Sequence record: OQ828465.1
Length of the DNA: 64,000 nucleotides
Reading direction: 5' to 3' (one strand)
The position numbers and the translations under genes are program-made. Below, in pieces: positions 4,056 to 52,311 of the stretch (position 1 is the stretch's first letter; the number at the start of each line of letters is the position of its first letter). The notes under the pieces were generated by a model, which made no database searches, was not told where the DNA came from, and was given only the letters and a program-made list of their open reading frames with translations.

Positions 4056-4316
4056 ATGACAACTTTCCTGACTTTTAAATCTGACGAAGACTTGGAGAAA
4101 GAAGCAATCCGTCGTGCACGTGCTATCATGGGTTTCCGTGGTGACCGTGATGCAGCTACTCGTCAGGTATGCATCAATCCTGTACGAGGTAAGGATTACC
4201 GTAACTGGTTATCCCATAGCGCTACCTGGAAAGATGGTAACATTGTTGTTGATGAAGATAGTCTCATTGAGCTAGCCCGTGCCATCATTGATGAGACCTA
4301 CCTGCACGATATGTAA
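4056..4316 (+). CDS. Hypothetical early protein
   Basis: 86 aa behind cassette 3. Confidence 0.75.
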   Translation: MTTFLTFKSDEDLEKEAIRRARAIMGFRGDRDAATRQVCINPVRGKDYRNWLSHSATWKDGNIVVDEDSLIELARAIIDETYLHDM

Positions 4317-4332
4317 TAACTACTACTCCCTT

Positions 4333-4396
4333 ATTCAAACATATTTAAACAGTATATTACTAACTTGATATTTAACCTTCAATTAATGTAAAAAGG
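4333..4396 (+). promoter_or_regulatory. Early promoter cassette copy 4
   Basis: 4333-4360 identical to copy 1; 4344-4396 identical to copy 2. Confidence 0.8.
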
Positions 4397-4406
4397 GACT
4401 TTAAAA

Positions 4407-4556
4407 ATGAAAGCATTCGCACTAGTGGTTATTGGTTTGACTTTTGGTGGACTGTTTGTAAACGCTAAGTTTGAAGAGCAAACTATTTCTAATGAAACTG
4501 TTATCCTCGGTCATCGTATCGGTCCCAATGGTCAAGAAATGCTCGTAACTAAATAG
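4407..4556 (+). CDS. Small membrane/secreted protein (49 aa, not in ORF track)
   Basis: MKAFALVVIGLTFGGLFVNAKFEEQ...; directly behind promoter cassette 4 and its RBS. Confidence 0.7.
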   Translation: MKAFALVVIGLTFGGLFVNAKFEEQTISNETVILGHRIGPNGQEMLVTK

Positions 4557-46915: not shown

Positions 46916-46929
46916 GAGATTTATATTAC
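46916..46929 (+). promoter_or_regulatory. Early promoter of chmA
   Basis: GAGATTTATATTAC. Confidence 0.75.
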
Positions 46930-47001
46930 TAAATTGAATCTAGTATACTAAGTACTTAGGTTCTTCTTGATCAAGAAACCATAATCGTAAAGGTATTTAA
47001 A

Positions 47002-48882
47002 ATGGCTGTTAACGAAAACGAAATCGGCACCGTTCAAACTCAAGCTACCACTCCGGCTCCGCAACCCACTGCACAGCGTCAAGCTCAACGTCCTGCTGGC
47101 GCACCTGGGTCAACTACTGGCATTAACCATCTAATGCGTCGCTCTGGGCGGCTAGATGGTTCTGATGCTCGTTCAGCAGATGCCCTACAAGTATTCACTA
47201 AAGTAAAAGAAGAAGCAATCCGCCATCAGGACCTACCTGATGATTTCGATATCCATCGTTTCGATCGCGATGCGCAACAAGTTGGTATGGCTGGTCTACT
47301 AATTGTTAAACTAGCTAAAGATATCAATGGTTCCATGAAGGCATTCGTTCGTACACTAGTACTCGATAACCTACCTGGTACTCGCATCCGTCCCCGTACC
47401 CACAAGATCAACAATGGTCTAACTGACGACATCATTGAAGAGAAGGTACTACCGCGTGATGTATTCACTGCTCAATACTGGAGCAAGATCGGCGAATTCC
47501 TACGGAACCGTTACAACATCCCTGGTCTAGAAGTACTATCTGCCGGTCCCCGTGCAGTGTATGCTGACTTCGACTTCAAAGATGAACTAGCTGTTAAGAA
47601 CCTACTAGTTGAATCTGTTAATATCTGTGAAGATGCTATCGCACGTCGTAACAATGAGACTCCGTTCTCTATTGCGACCCACATCAAAGCAGAAAACGAA
47701 CAGCTTACCTGCAACCTAGACTACAATGGTATTCCGGTTAAAGATAGCTGCGGTAATCCGATTCGTTCTGACCTGGTTATCTCCACTAGCCGTGGTAAGA
47801 AAACCAACGTGCCTGAGAACGAGTTCTATGATACCGATAGCCAGCTAAACCAAGTTAGTCTATTCGTAGATCTACATTGGACTCCGACCACTGGCCAGCA
47901 ACAAGGTATGTTTGGCGTAACTCTACCTGGTGCAGCTCTACCTCCGCAGTTCACTCCTTACATCGTTATCACTGACGTTCGTAAGGCATCCTGGATCCAA
48001 GCATGGACTCTAGAAATGTGGCTGTTCGCACTCGGTAATGCGTATCGTGCAACTGCATCCCAGGCATGGGCTCGTACCCTAATGCCGAAGATCGCTACTA
48101 GCAAGATGCGTGATATTGGTGCACTTGGTTATTACTCAGAGCTAGGTAAAGCGATTGAAACTCGCACCGAAGCATTCATGGCAGACGACAGCAACTTCGT
48201 AATGCTAATGAACAAGATGGTTAACCAGAACCCTGCATTCCAGATCGATATCGATCCGATGGGTGACAACTCTGCTCTTGAGCAAGTAGTCCTAGATGCA
48301 GCTGGTGGCGTAAACCAAGCTCGTGCAGTTAGCCTGATCTTCCAAGCTCTAACTAACCTATATGGCACTGATTTCCGTCAGTTCTATAACCTAGCTGAAG
48401 CTGGTCCGATCATCTTTGACAACCATCATGAAGTAGACCTCGGTCACTACACTGATGAGCATGGCGAACTAAGTGACCGTCGTGATCTTGACGTTCTAGG
48501 TGCCATGAACATGTCTGAAGGTAACGATCAAGAGTGGAAGACCTGGTATGCTACTCAAGTAGGTAATGACCACATTGTGCGTCGTATGAATAACAGTAAA
48601 GGCTTCGACAAGATGTACCTAGGTAACGTTACCTATACTGGTCGTGCTCGTCGTCTAACCTTTAACCCGAAATTCATCACCGCAATGGATGCCGCAGCAG
48701 CAGCAGCTGGTGTAACTGTAACCATGGAAAACCTAATTACCAACTTCGGTCAACAGCGCTTCGCTGGTTACACCGGTATGGGTAACATGGCTGTTTCTGG
48801 TAGTGCACAAGTTGGCATGGCTGGCAGCATGGGTCAAACTTACGGCGCTCCTTCCTATAATGCACCGGGTACCTGGTACTAA
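47002..48882 (+). CDS. chmA: Chimallin, phage nucleus shell protein (gp54)
   Basis: 626 aa, [12 protein letters not shown] start, immediately upstream of nvRNAP beta'; highly biased codon usage; G/M-rich C-terminal segments. Confidence 0.92.
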
Positions 48883-48899
48883 TAGGAAATACCTCGGTA

Positions 48900-49205
48900 G
48901 ATAGGGATGTTAAATAAGTAACATCCCGATTCTAATACTGCGACCCTGGTTCACTTCGGTGATAACGGTTAGGAGTAGGTTCCGTGAAGTAATCGACTAG
49001 TGGACTTAGTCTAGGTCGACCTATCACTACACGAGGATGATAGATCACTTAACCGAAAGGAGTTACTCAAAAGGTAACGTGTGATCAAAAACTACAATGG
49101 ATGGTAAATGAGACTAGTGCCGGTATGCTACAAAGAAGAGCGGAGGTTAAGCTTTGTAGATGACGCTAGGCTCGGGCCAGGCTCCGTTGGTGGTCCATTG
49201 TAAAA
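48900..49205 (+). ncRNA. Candidate structured non-coding RNA downstream of chmA
   Basis: No ORF; many helices with UUCG and GAAA tetraloops; possible pseudoknot; followed by terminator. Confidence 0.6.
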
Positions 49206-49214
49206 ACTGATATA

Positions 49215-49250
49215 GCGGCTCCTTCGGGGGCCGCTTATATCTCCTTTTTT
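49215..49250 (+). terminator. Intrinsic terminator
   Basis: GCGGCTCC-TTCG-GGGGCCGC, downstream T-tract. Confidence 0.85.
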
Positions 49251-49276
49251 TGTTAATCGATAAATAGGAGTTTGGT

Positions 49277-50413
49277 ATGGGTCTTTATGCCAAAGTTGTT
49301 GATCATGATGAAGTACATGATCAATTTACGGGTAAACGTATTTATGCCAATGATTACAATACGAGTAACTCAGATGAGAAAGAAGAATTTGATAGGCATT
49401 TCTATTCTCATTTCCAAGATTCAGAAGCAATTGAAAGTAGCGTAAGTTGTGATTGTCGAGCAATCGAAGACGCACATAAACTCGGAGTAATCTGTGATAT
49501 TTGTAATACTCCAGTTGTCAATACTTCTAGCCGCCCTATCGAACCATCAATGTGGGTTCGTACACCAAAACATGTACGTAGTCTAATTAACCCACGTTTA
49601 ATCATTATGCTAACCGGATATCTAGTAACTAAAGAATTCGATTTCTTAGCATATCTAACTGATACTTCTTATCGATACGATGTGGAATCTATTGGTTCTA
49701 AAGAAACACGCAGAAAAGTAGATAGGCTACTGCATCGAGGATTTGAAAGAGGATTAAATCACTTCATTGATAATTTCAATGAGATCTTCCAATTCCTACT
49801 AGATGCAAATATTATTTCTAATAATAAATCCGAATTCGCTCAATTCGTTGCTCAGAATAAAGATAAGTTATTCCCTAAATATTTACCAGTTCCTTCTAAA
49901 CTCTGTTTCGTAGCAGAATCAACCACATCTGGTACTTACTTAGATAAACCAATTGAAGCAGCAATTGATGCTACCTTAACCTTCGCTAGTATTGATGCAT
50001 CATCTGTACCACTTAGTCCAATTAAAGCTCAGAATAGGACTATGCGAGGACTAAGACTATATGGCCAGTTCTACGAGATCTACGCAAAATCACGAATTGC
50101 TCAAAAGCCTGGTCTTGCTCGGCGTCACATGTTTGGTGCTCGTCTCAACGCTACGGCACGTGCAGTAATCACTTCTATTAGTGACCCGCATGATTATGAT
50201 GAATTACATATCCCTTGGGGAGTAGGTTGTCAATTATTAAAGTATCATCTAACTAACAAGTTAAAAGCTAAGTTTAACATGACAACTCGTGAAGCATTCT
50301 CATTTGTATATGAGAATGTACTTCAATATAACCAAATCATCGCTGATCTATTTAAAGAGTTAATTGCAGAGGCCGCACCATATAAAGGAATGGGTTGCAC
50401 TTTTCACCGAAAT
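49277..50413 (+). CDS. nvRNAP beta'-like subunit (gp55), exon 1
   Basis: Zn-binding CDC..CDIC, RRHMFGARLNATARAVITS; ends at FHRN just before intron 1. Confidence 0.9.
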
Positions 50414-50718
50414 TAATTTGTATATTAATACTAAATGGTTTCCTTGTAATAGAAATATTACTCGACAAAACTCCTTTAATTGCTGGGACATCTCAATGAG
50501 ACAATCAGCAGCGAAGCTTTCCAGAAATGGATTGAACGTTCAACGACTATCGAAAGGCACGAAAGTGAACCGAGTAGAGTAGAGTCAAGTGACTCGAAAT
50601 GGGGAGCACCTTACTGGGTAATGCCAAAGGTGAAGATATAGTCTGGTCTGCATGGTGACATGCAGCTGTCTATTATTAATAGACGGGATAAGCTTAACGA
50701 ACTTATCTGAACACAACG
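50414..50718 (+). ncRNA. Group I intron 1 (305 nt, no ORF)
   Basis: Exon ends in U, intron ends in G; P1 GAAAU/GUUUC with U.G; P AATTGCTGGGA, Q AATCAGCAG, R TTCAACGACTA, S AAGATATAGTC. Confidence 0.9.
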
Positions 50719-50826
50719 CCGACCCTTCAACGTGGATCTACTCAACAATTCTTTATTACTAAAGTAAAAGATGACATTAATGATAATTCAATCAGCATGT
50801 CAGTATTATGCCTTAAAGCGCCTAAT
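50719..50826 (+). CDS. nvRNAP beta'-like subunit, exon 2 (36 codons)
   Basis: PTLQRGSTQQFFITKVKDDINDNSISMSVLCLKAPN; restores HRN-PTL and PN-ADFDGD in frame. Confidence 0.9.
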
Positions 50827-51319
50827 GGACAACTAACTAAATAAGGTAAAAACAATGGAACAAAACGGAGTAGTGTCCGTCTTTGATCCGGCTTCATTTA
50901 AAATTGAATATGAAGTGCTTGATAAATACCTTATTAAGTTAATCAAGTCTAGTTCCCCCAGTGAGTAATCATTGGGGTGAGTTCTCTCTAATTGCTGGGA
51001 TATCCTGTTAAACTAATCTACCACTGCGAGTCGAAAGACAAAGCCAAGGTTTGAAAAAGATTAGGTAGGGCCAATCAGCAGCCAAGCTCCGTAACATTCC
51101 ATTTAGGAATAGGAGAAGGTTCAACGACTATTACGGTATCAGGTGCACCGGTCCTAGAAATAGGATGTAGGGTCAAGTGACTCGAAATGGGAGACACCCC
51201 ACTCCGAAAGGAAGGGTGAAGATATAGTCTGGTCTGCATGGCGACATGCAGCAGGTGGTAATTATCATGTGGTAATTATACTACCGGGTATGGATTAACG
51301 ACCCATACTGAACATAACG
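50827..51319 (+). ncRNA. Group I intron 2 (493 nt) inside the catalytic NADFDGD motif
   Basis: P1 U/GGACA...UGUCC-G; same P, Q, R, S elements as intron 1; terminal G. Confidence 0.9.
50855..50968 (+). pseudogene. 37-codon ORF in intron 2, probable homing-endonuclease remnant
   Basis: TAAGGT RBS + ATG in P1 loop; MEQNGVVSVFDPASFKIEYEVLDKYLIKLIKSSSPSE*. Confidence 0.5.
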
Positions 51320-51538
51320 GCGGATTTTGACGGCGATCAATTGAATTTAACGTTAATGCCTGATGTGTATTTAACCAAAGCAACTGAACGCATTGCTCCA
51401 CATACATGGGTTCTATCTATTGATGAACCACATGAAATCTCAGGTAACCTTGAATTACAGGGTCCTGTTGTAGAAACAATTATTAACTGGGCGCATGAGA
51501 AGTATTTACCGCCATTAGAAGAATGGTTGAAGTCGTAA
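51320..51538 (+). CDS. nvRNAP beta'-like subunit, exon 3 (gp56.1-like)
   Basis: ADFDGDQLNLTLMPD...; spliced product 487 aa. Confidence 0.92.
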   Translation, partial: ADFDGDQLNLTLMPDVYLTKATERIAPHTWVLSIDEPHEISGNLELQGPVVETIINWAHEKYLPPLEEWLKS

Positions 51539-51679
51539 TAATAAACTTACCCCTACTATTTATGTAGTAGGGGGCTTTATTTCCTGTTATGGCGGCGACT
51601 AACCATGGATGTAAAGTTCCACTGGATTTAATTTCAGATTTATATCACTAAGATGCAATAGTGATAAGGGGAATACCCA

Positions 51680-51868
51680 ATGTCTAATATTCGTGAAATT
51701 ATTCGACGTAACCCGGAATGTTTATCACAAGTCGAATGAGATGAACGTGAAGCCAGATCGGTAGCCGTATTCACTAAGAGATATATTACTTGCGGGAATG
51801 GTGATGTAGTGGTAAACAGAAGGTTTGTCGATGCATATGTCGAAATGATCTCTAAGCTTAATGATTAA
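51680..51868 (+). pseudogene. 62-codon ORF interrupted by a single in-frame TGA (51737-51739)
   Basis: Promoter TATATCAC 51641-51648, AAGGGG RBS; frame stays open 42 codons past the TGA. Confidence 0.55.
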
Positions 51869-51927
51869 AAGCAAAATAAATTAATAGGGGAGTTTGAATC
51901 CCCTATTAATTCTTTGAGGCTAGTAGT

Positions 51928-52311
51928 ATGCATGATTTAGTTATCTATTGGAAAGCTCATGATGGTTACTACATACAAGATGAATATGGCGAACATCCTG
52001 TAACTTTCCAATTCGCAGAAATTAATTGGAATTTCACTGGGGCGTATGTATACGGTGGTTCTGAATTAATTGATGACCACTTAAGATTCGGTATAGATTT
52101 CAAAGTACGTGATATTGAATGGCAAATTAGGTTTGATTTAGACGGTAAATTTACTCTGTACAATATGTCAAATAATGATCGGGATGATACGTTTGTAATT
52201 CCAGTTACTTCAAAATTTGCCCAATTCTTTAAAAAGACAGGCAAACATGTAGTTACTAATGAAGTTATCACTATCCCAGTTAATTGCTCTTTTGATAAGC
52301 AAATTTATTAA
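51928..52311 (+). CDS. Hypothetical protein (gp57-like)
   Basis: 127 aa. Confidence 0.75.
   Translation: MHDLVIYWKAHDGYYIQDEYGEHPVTFQFAEINWNFTGAYVYGGSELIDDHLRFGIDFKVRDIEWQIRFDLDGKFTLYNMSNNDRDDTFVIPVTSKFAQFFKKTGKHVVTNEVITIPVNCSFDKQIY

Follow-up and report, generated by a model that had tools for sequence, protein, structure and literature searches.

A predicted multi-domain RNA fold between the chmA stop codon and its terminator in phiKZ-type jumbo phages

Results

Genes and gap at the locus

The window analysed here is a stretch of 64,000 nucleotides (nt) of sequence record OQ828465.1, numbered from its first letter, and the subject is the element at 48883-49240, which separates the nuclear shell protein gene chmA from the RNA polymerase gene gp55. 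Sequence identity places the window in a phiKZ-type Pseudomonas aeruginosa jumbo phage and equates the element with the PHIKZ054-PHIKZ055 intergenic region of phiKZ itself: positions 48600-49500 share 100% identity with PA_ZH1, PaZh_1, Churi and further Pseudomonas phages, and 48860-49260 are 100% identical to phiKZ AF399011 47506-47906, the element under study being AF399011 47529-47886. The comparative analysis described below supports a structured, multi-domain RNA fold on the plus strand, placed after the stop codon of chmA and before a conserved terminator, and indicates an old element whose structure has been maintained by selection. In a phage that has been studied intensively, it represents a genuine and apparently undescribed family of structured RNA. 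The flanking genes are the following.

47002..48882, plus strand: chmA (PHIKZ054), nuclear shell protein gene (Pfam PF25677 Chimallin_Phikzvirus, E=0, full length; list of open reading frames)
49277..50415, plus strand: first exon of the nvRNAP beta' gene gp55 (tblastn with the uninterrupted HPP-Temi homologue; list of open reading frames)

The stop codon of chmA is TAA, with TAG directly after it, while gp55 lies downstream of both the element and the terminator, its start codon 25 nt past the U run. An earlier note on this DNA, made from the letters alone, had described an elevated-GC gap devoid of open reading frames (ORFs), and both properties are borne out: no ORF longer than 38 amino acids (aa) is present in 48883-49250, and the GC content of the gap is 0.42-0.47 against approximately 0.32-0.40 in neighbouring genes, with chmA itself similar to the gap. 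The GC skew is positive. An early-promoter-like TATATTAC (46922-46929), approximately 75 nt upstream of the chmA start, and an AT-rich stretch at 46940-46960 fit the early-type and middle-type start sites that have both been reported for PHIKZ054 (PMC8244752). PHIKZ054 was assigned to a six-gene operon by Wicke et al. (PMC8244752).

Anatomy of the predicted fold

The consensus, composed of the RNAalifold structure and a proposed loop-loop pairing, contains 110 pairs in 16 helices. These are organized into two halves, a four-way junction (domain A) on the 5' side and two three-way junctions (domains B1 and B2) on the 3' side, followed by a hairpin resembling an intrinsic terminator.

48893..49035, plus strand: domain A, four-way junction (RNAalifold consensus; compensatory changes in closing helix, arm 1 and arm 3)
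48893-96/49032-35, plus strand: closing helix of domain A (compensatory changes)
48898-48934, plus strand: arm 1 of domain A (compensatory changes; includes the pairing 48898-901/48931-34 added in this analysis)
48936-48977, plus strand: arm 2 of domain A, with UUCG-capped tip (includes the pairing 48936-45/48967-77 added in this analysis)
48984-49027, plus strand: arm 3 of domain A (compensatory changes)
49043..49086, plus strand: domain B1, three-way junction (stem 49043-48/49081-86; GAAA-capped stem of 2 base pairs (bp) 49053-54/49059-60; 6-bp hairpin 49062-67/49073-78)
49095..49200, plus strand: domain B2, three-way junction (8-bp closing helix 49095-102/49193-200; long arm and 5-bp hairpin)
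49110-19/49164-73 (10 bp) and 49128-35/49152-59 (8 bp), plus strand: long arm of B2 (10-bp helix added in this analysis)
49176-80/49187-91 (5 bp), plus strand: hairpin of B2 (added in this analysis)
49209..49251, plus strand: intrinsic-terminator-like hairpin (13 bp, 49209-12/49238-41 and 49214-22/49227-35, with UUCG loop; then UCC and U7 at 49245-51)

Most helices proposed in the earlier note are recovered in this consensus. Helices 48904-12/48919-27 and 49095-102/49193-200 are confirmed and covary, as does the B1 stem 49043-48/49081-86 with the enclosed CC-GAAA-GG and 49062-67/49073-78, the more so when PhiPA3 is added. Helix 48951-54/48959-62 is also confirmed, being invariant, and so is helix 49128-35/49152-59, while for 48993-98/49014-19 it is the outer part that stands, with one compensatory change. 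In contrast, the proposed local hairpin CTATCA/TGATAG (49021-43) is not conserved in Pawinskivirus, and its bases pair over long range instead (48984-89/49021-27 and 48893-96/49032-35), with compensatory changes in both helices. These long-range pairs, in place of the hairpin, turn the 5' half of the element into a four-way junction.

In domain B2 the apical loops may approach each other through a predicted 5-bp contact between 49141-45 and 49182-86. A second possible contact, between B1 and B2 through CUUAACC/GGUUAAG (49048-54/49145-51), was not adopted: it is invariant and clashes with the B1 helices, and the retention of its 5-nt core in PhiPA3 is weak evidence.

The terminator-like hairpin is 83-100% identical across Phikzvirus, Pawinskivirus and PhiPA3. 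Behind chmA a comparable hairpin is also present in Psa21, D6, Noxifer, 201phi2-1, Viktualia and Phabio, and one is kept in every relative examined. A terminator consensus scan made no call at 49209-49251, where the T run begins 3 nt past the stem and the scan requires a distance of 0-2.

Comparative evidence for the fold

Ten distinct sequences were compared, six from Phikzvirus (the window, 124.01, SL2, T2P, W10-2, Brmt) and four from Pawinskivirus (HPP-Temi, PA1C, HHBS36_1, BRkr). Across these variants 99.5% of the pair cells of the element are paired, and 8 pairs, distributed over 8 of the 16 helices, differ in both bases. Among 500 column shuffles none matched the observed values for pairing and both-sided change, and a control in which pairing partners were slid by 1-3 columns yielded at most one pair with both-sided changes. 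Paired columns vary less than unpaired ones (15% against 31%). The earlier note had claimed a structured non-coding RNA far beyond the needs of a terminator, and the three multi-helix domains preceding the terminator-like hairpin, their covariation and the plus-strand signal agree with that claim; covariation and conservation in relatives are both present, comprising the 8 both-sided pairs, two genera and a diverged copy in PhiPA3.

Thermodynamic prediction points in the same direction. Together with the terminator, positions 48883-49245 fold at -123.4 kcal/mol (z = -4.68), and none of 100 shuffles is as stable. The minus strand of the gap folds less well, at -105.6 kcal/mol, and this weaker fold, with the many conserved G-U pairs, assigns the RNA to the plus strand.

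The unpaired parts of the element are unequally conserved. The 16-nt apical loop 49136-51 and GCUCCG 49181-86 of B2 are invariant in all ten variants, as are GGUAAA and the domain A junction strand GGUUC (48978-82), whereas other loops and linkers vary freely. Such invariant loops and junction strands count against generic stabilising hairpins, which are not expected to display them. Domain B1 is the sole part retained in all four types of the element (phiKZ, Pawinskivirus, phiHQ and PhiPA3), and when PhiPA3 and a weak Phabio candidate are added in a model-fitted alignment, of a kind that leans towards the model, 7 of its pairs change on both sides.

Distribution among phages

A BLAST comparison with 50,697 phage records located the element once per genome and in P. 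aeruginosa jumbo phages only: approximately 47 Phikzvirus records match at 95-100% and the Pawinskivirus group at 83-84%, while phiHQ matches in the 3' half only and PhiPA3 in pieces. Covariance models of domains A and B recovered PhiPA3 (partial) and the weak Phabio candidate only, and matched none of Psa21, 201phi2-1, Viktualia, D6, Noxifer and RP13; the PhiPA3 homologue of domain A was found by covariance model R2 at E=1e-10. Within the 64-kb window the same domain models detected no further copy, and a blastn comparison of the element with the remaining sequence, neighbouring introns included, revealed no similarity. In IMG/VR and JGI metagenomes the B1 motif returned the PA7 and PhiPA3 copies, the rest being chance matches without the flanking helix. 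Similarly, the 69 stretches matched by the 15-nt arm-1 motif are all chance matches except for the PA7 and PhiPA3 copies. The domain-A pattern gave no match in 185,579 bacterial and archaeal genomes (one per species), and the element is therefore neither a mimic of a host RNA by sequence nor a prophage element.

Conservation and mosaic history

In sequence, the element differs less from one phage genus to another than do the essential genes flanking it. Between phiKZ and Pawinskivirus it is 83-89% identical, against 53-56% for the last 300 nt of chmA, 62-63% for the first 280 nt of gp55 and 48.6% for the ChmA protein; in 40-nt windows the identity is 25-70% in the coding flanks and 75-100% within the element.

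The distribution of these identities marks the element as a mosaic, exchanged whole or in patches among jumbo phages with P. aeruginosa as common host. The ChmA protein groups Pawinskivirus with PhiPA3 (66% aa identity), and the Pawinskivirus RNA is phiKZ-like from arm 2 onward (90-100%), with arm 1 alone PhiPA3-like (83%). Within Phikzvirus the flanks are at least 97.8% identical, and domain B of SL2, T2P, W10-2, Brmt and PA7 is 91-92.5% identical to phiKZ; this patched domain B carries Pawinskivirus variant states, including a compensatory pair in the 10-bp helix. In phiHQ the flanks, B1 and B2 are of Pawinskivirus type, and another structured module, approximately 310 nt long, takes the place of domain A. 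PhiPA3 holds a diverged copy in which the closing helix, arms 1 and 2 and B1 are kept with many compensatory differences and B2 has diverged, the comparison of domain A having been made by eye; arm 3 is expanded by approximately 130 nt (domain A 284 nt, against 154 nt). Since the RNA with its terminator is the only locally similar stretch, we infer that the element recombines between co-infecting phages. Co-conversion from homing of the gp55 introns was considered as the cause of the mosaic and rejected, the intervening gp55 sequence not being converted.

The same site in other relatives

In every Pseudomonas chimallivirus examined, chmA is followed by the terminator hairpin and then by the RNA polymerase gene, in some with a small ORF in between. 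In D6 and Noxifer the terminator directly follows the chmA stop codon with no insert, which identifies the element as accessory. Eight of the ten lineages examined carry a structured insert at this exact site, with unrelated sequences; its length is approximately 160-235 nt in 201phi2-1, Viktualia and Phabio and approximately 370 nt in Psa21. The inserts at this site fold better than their shuffles (z -1.6 to -4.7). Those of different sequence, and a second module, present at this site in phiHQ and Psa21, are located as follows.

201phi2-1 (L007) 4259-4420, Phabio (L008) 4253-4487 and Viktualia (L010) 4262-4454: structured inserts of other sequence (z -3.1 to -4.6)
phiHQ (L004) 2343-2500, Psa21 (L006) 4410-4554 and Ralstonia jumbo phage RP13 (L117) 2501-2588: second structured module, no Rfam match

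The 201phi2-1 and Phabio inserts both open with a GAAA-capped GGGAUC/GGUCCC hairpin, and the motif CCUAAAU..CUGG..CUAAA..GGU is common to those of 201phi2-1 and Viktualia. The weak Phabio match to the B1 three-way junction lies at 4409-4482 of its locus (L008; E ~0.2-0.3).

The phiHQ module matches part of the Psa21 insert at 73% identity and an intergenic stretch of RP13 at 82%, with a common terminal stem that shows compensatory changes. The RP13 copy ends approximately 10 nt before a tRNA-Leu gene, so a module of the chmA site also lives in a stable-RNA context unrelated to chmA. Within IMG/VR its pattern was found only in Psa21, and it gave no match in the bacterial and archaeal genome collection.

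Known RNA families and coding potential

Compared with Rfam 15, as the earlier note had proposed, the element matches no family: positions 48600-49500 gave no match at the gathering threshold nor at E<=10, and no match to the element was found at E<=1 in related loci, PhiPA3, HPP-Temi and phiHQ among them. The method works in this setting, as the same searches score both group I introns of gp55 and a twister-sister ribozyme in RP13. Within the gap there was no match to the known self-cleaving ribozymes of Rfam 15 (hammerhead, twister, twister-sister, pistol, hatchet, HDV-like and others), to its riboswitches and cis-regulatory leaders, or to the GOLLD and ROOL models. ARAGORN detected no tRNA or tmRNA in 48000-52000 or in eight related loci, except for two annotated tRNAs of RP13. 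Two observations count against a group I intron: there is no RF00028 match at E<=10, where at least 50 bits at the P3-P9 core were looked for, and the element starts past the chmA stop codons and restores no frame, the ChmA of relatives ending at the same point with or without an insert. Three further candidates were rejected by inspection: a hammerhead-like core, whose junction strands do not fit, a sponge for RsmA/CsrA, whose GGA motifs are not conserved, and a CRISPR-repeat mimic, with a match of 7 nt only to the type I-F repeat.

Coding explanations fare no better. No start is kept across clades, the variable stretches show non-conservative changes, and variants differ by indels of 1-2 nt, which argues against a small protein gene; one frame of 20-31 aa is open in all ten variants, with a start codon that is not conserved. 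GenBank records carry hypothetical proteins of 35 and 62 aa that span the element and terminator in HPP-Temi (L001 2499-2606 and 2752-2940) and HHBS36_1 (L087 299-406 and 551-739); such annotations of 35-62 aa, whose ORFs lack conservation, are probably gene-caller artefacts. Three Shine-Dalgarno-like motifs occur, GGAGGU at 49143-49148 in the invariant loop, AAGGAG at 49057-49062 in B1 and AGGAG at 48972-48976 in arm 2. A conserved start codon follows none of them, and their excess is not significant, approximately 1.25 GGAG being expected by chance per 320 nt. A small ORF behind the GGAGGU was rejected, the ATG being absent in SL2, PA1C and others.

Discussion

The reading tentatively preferred here, plausible rather than probable, is that the element is an accessory, specifically folded non-coding RNA (ncRNA) in chmA's 3' untranslated region (UTR), likely recognised by a partner and possibly present as a stable 3' fragment. 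Each time chmA is transcribed the element would be transcribed too, given its place after the stop codon and ahead of the conserved terminator, the absence of any terminator-like hairpin before it, and the position of the terminator directly behind chmA in relatives that lack the element. Its RNA would fold into the three junction domains, A as a four-way and B1 and B2 as three-way junctions, the last with a loop-loop contact, and would then be recognised by a specific partner, either a protein or another RNA. A stable 3' fragment, protected by its own fold and the terminator hairpin, might be left when the coding part of the mRNA decays. Of the co-transcribed ncRNA or 3' element claimed in the earlier note, the structured, non-coding plus-strand RNA before a terminator-like hairpin stands; that it is co-transcribed and processed, acts in trans and has a partner is what we infer. 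A localisation or export signal as a universal role for chmA mRNA, also suggested in that note, is disfavoured: D6 and Noxifer carry no insert and others carry unrelated structured sequences, and ChmC eCLIP in PhiPA3, reported for annotated genes only, showed little specificity among phage mRNAs, with peaks near start codons (PMC11077065).

The main rival, possible but somewhat unlikely, is a cis-acting 3' stabiliser or attenuator without a function of its own, which would shield the abundant chmA mRNA from 3'-to-5' exonucleases and set a high ratio of ChmA to gp55 within one operon. The unrelated structured inserts in 8 of 10 lineages suggest that structure at this site matters, the short distance of 25 nt between the U run and the gp55 start means that gp55 may depend on read-through, and PHIKZ054 belongs to the six-gene operon mentioned above. 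However, D6 and Noxifer manage with the terminator alone, the invariant long loops, the junction strands and the three multi-helix junctions exceed what an exonuclease barrier needs, and the replacement module stands next to a tRNA gene in RP13, away from chmA. A regulatory leader for gp55, acting as a ligand or polymerase sensor in the manner of a riboswitch or of put/EAR-like processive antitermination and controlling read-through of the terminator, would suit the position immediately upstream of a strong terminator and an essential polymerase-subunit gene, as well as the aptamer-like three-way junction of B2 with its possible loop-loop contact. It is nevertheless very improbable, given that inspection, which was not exhaustive, revealed no alternative pairing competing with the 13-bp UUCG-capped terminator stem, that D6 and Noxifer have the same gene order and terminator without the element, and that the known riboswitch and antiterminator families yield no match.

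A selfish or relict RNA, such as the remnant of a mobile intron-like element or of a ribozyme, could persist at a highly transcribed, tolerant site and spread by recombination with no benefit to the phage. The patchy distribution, mosaicism and phylogenetic incongruence would be expected of such an RNA, and the neighbourhood is rich in mobile RNA, with two group I introns in gp55 1.2-2 kb downstream. This origin is improbable all the same: the element resembles neither the neighbouring introns nor the rest of the window and has no Rfam intron or ribozyme match at E<=10, no endonuclease or other mobility gene accompanies it, and its pairing has been kept by compensatory change over the phiKZ-PhiPA3 divergence, a sign of selection on the fold. 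That there is no RNA element at all, and that a missed small protein gene or a DNA-level signal occupies the gap, is scarcely credible; the hypothetical proteins of 35-62 aa in some GenBank records and the 20-31 aa frame open in all ten variants speak for it, and unconserved starts, non-conservative differences and 1-2 nt indels against it, as do the conserved G-U pairs and compensatory changes, which are strand-specific signatures of RNA. The preference for a specifically folded, partner-recognised RNA over a generic stabiliser is based on the invariant long loops, the complexity of the junctions, the conservation across genera, the dispensability in D6 and Noxifer and the tRNA-adjacent sister module.

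Several observations weigh against this preferred reading. Without the terminator the z-score of the element is -2.5 only, three coding controls of the same length giving -0.9 to -1.6, and thermodynamics alone is thus moderate evidence, the case resting on comparison. In the comparison, most covarying cells trace to the single split between phiKZ and Pawinskivirus, and the sequences are all drawn from a narrow range of Pseudomonas jumbo phages. The B2 loop-loop pairing CGGAG/CTCCG (49141-45/49182-86) is compatible with the fold and displays no covariation, since both strands are invariant. The high cross-genus identity could reflect recent transfer and not strong constraint. Every related insert occupies the same place, from the chmA stop codon to the terminator, which fits a role in cis equally well. 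The main texts of the phiKZ dRNA-seq, Grad-seq and ONT-cappable-seq papers name no RNA at this site; a 2026 jumbo-phage review likewise makes no mention of one.

A bolder extension, speculative and decidedly less likely, regards the element as a new class of complex-folded RNA exchanged among P. aeruginosa jumbo phages, which would be made very early and abundantly through the chmA transcript and act in trans in conflict. It might serve as a decoy or inhibitor of a host defence directed at RNA or ribosomes, as a tool of phage-phage competition or as a new ribozyme. In that case the chmA 3' UTR would serve RNA modules across Chimalliviridae as a general docking site, with the phiHQ/Psa21/RP13 module and the inserts of 201phi2-1, Phabio and Viktualia representing further classes.

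Comparison with known systems and significance

GOLLD and ROOL are complex multi-domain RNAs of phages and prophages, often adjoining tRNA genes, approximately 600-800 nt long and both Rfam families. The likeness of the chmA element to them is one of kind only, namely a multi-domain phage RNA, whose phiHQ/Psa21 sister module adjoins tRNA-Leu in RP13. With group I introns (RF00028) it shares a comparable size, a multi-domain build, a possible pseudoknot and occurrence in a phage, but the gp55 neighbours score 76-89 bits where the element has no match, and its proposed pairing topology is not that of P3/P7. Like the intercistronic or 3' stabilising hairpins of bacterial operons, the element is situated between two genes of a presumed operon, before a terminator and behind the more expressed gene. 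However, such hairpins are simple and without conserved loops, whereas the chmA element combines three junction domains with invariant unpaired stretches.

Abundant ncRNAs processed from 3' UTRs have been described in P. aeruginosa phage PAK_P3, and phiKZ has an ncRNA from the PHIKZ298/297 intergenic region (PMC10914365, PMC8545117). Like the element, PAK_P3 ncRNA1 and ncRNA2 and the PHIKZ298/297 ncRNA are non-coding, belong to virulent P. aeruginosa phages and lie downstream of a coding gene. They have no transcription start of their own and accumulate as processed RNAs (PMC10914365, PMC8545117). They are shorter (approximately 100-210 nt, against approximately 320 nt) and have no known relation to the element in sequence or structure.

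Among nucleus-forming phages phiKZ serves as the model, and its defining gene, chmA, is essential and expressed very early and in great abundance; yet the predicted RNA of approximately 320 nt with three junction domains on the chmA transcript is unannotated and absent from Rfam 15. If the element binds a host or phage factor, an RNA layer would be added to the biology of nucleus-forming phages and to phage-phage and phage-host conflict. If it is only a stabiliser, it would explain a boost of chmA expression and would matter for engineering of the locus. Automatic annotators meanwhile call small proteins, probably spurious, across the element. D6 and Noxifer offer a natural model of its clean deletion, and phiKZ can already be addressed with Cas13-based editing, antisense oligomers and transposon sequencing; a phage TnSeq preprint, with data per gene only, reports chmA and orf55 as essential (PMC12676376).

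Introns of gp55 and the RP13 ribozyme match

The gp55 gene is split by two group I introns without ORFs, identified with Rfam on the plus strand at 50416-50665 (88.9 bits) and 50931-51251 (75.6 bits). Alignment by tblastn with the uninterrupted HPP-Temi protein divides the gene into three exons at roughly 49277-50415, 50707-50829 and 51317-51529. Introns predicted for gp56, gp72 and gp179 showed no splicing according to Putzeys et al. The annotated length of gp55 varies among Phikzvirus strains from 1140 to 1314 nt, which suggests intron polymorphism in the genus. The twister-sister ribozyme match in RP13 lies in an intergenic region (L117 89-164, LC554890 ~139392-139467) and scores 36 bits against a gathering threshold of 34 (E=1.6e-4).

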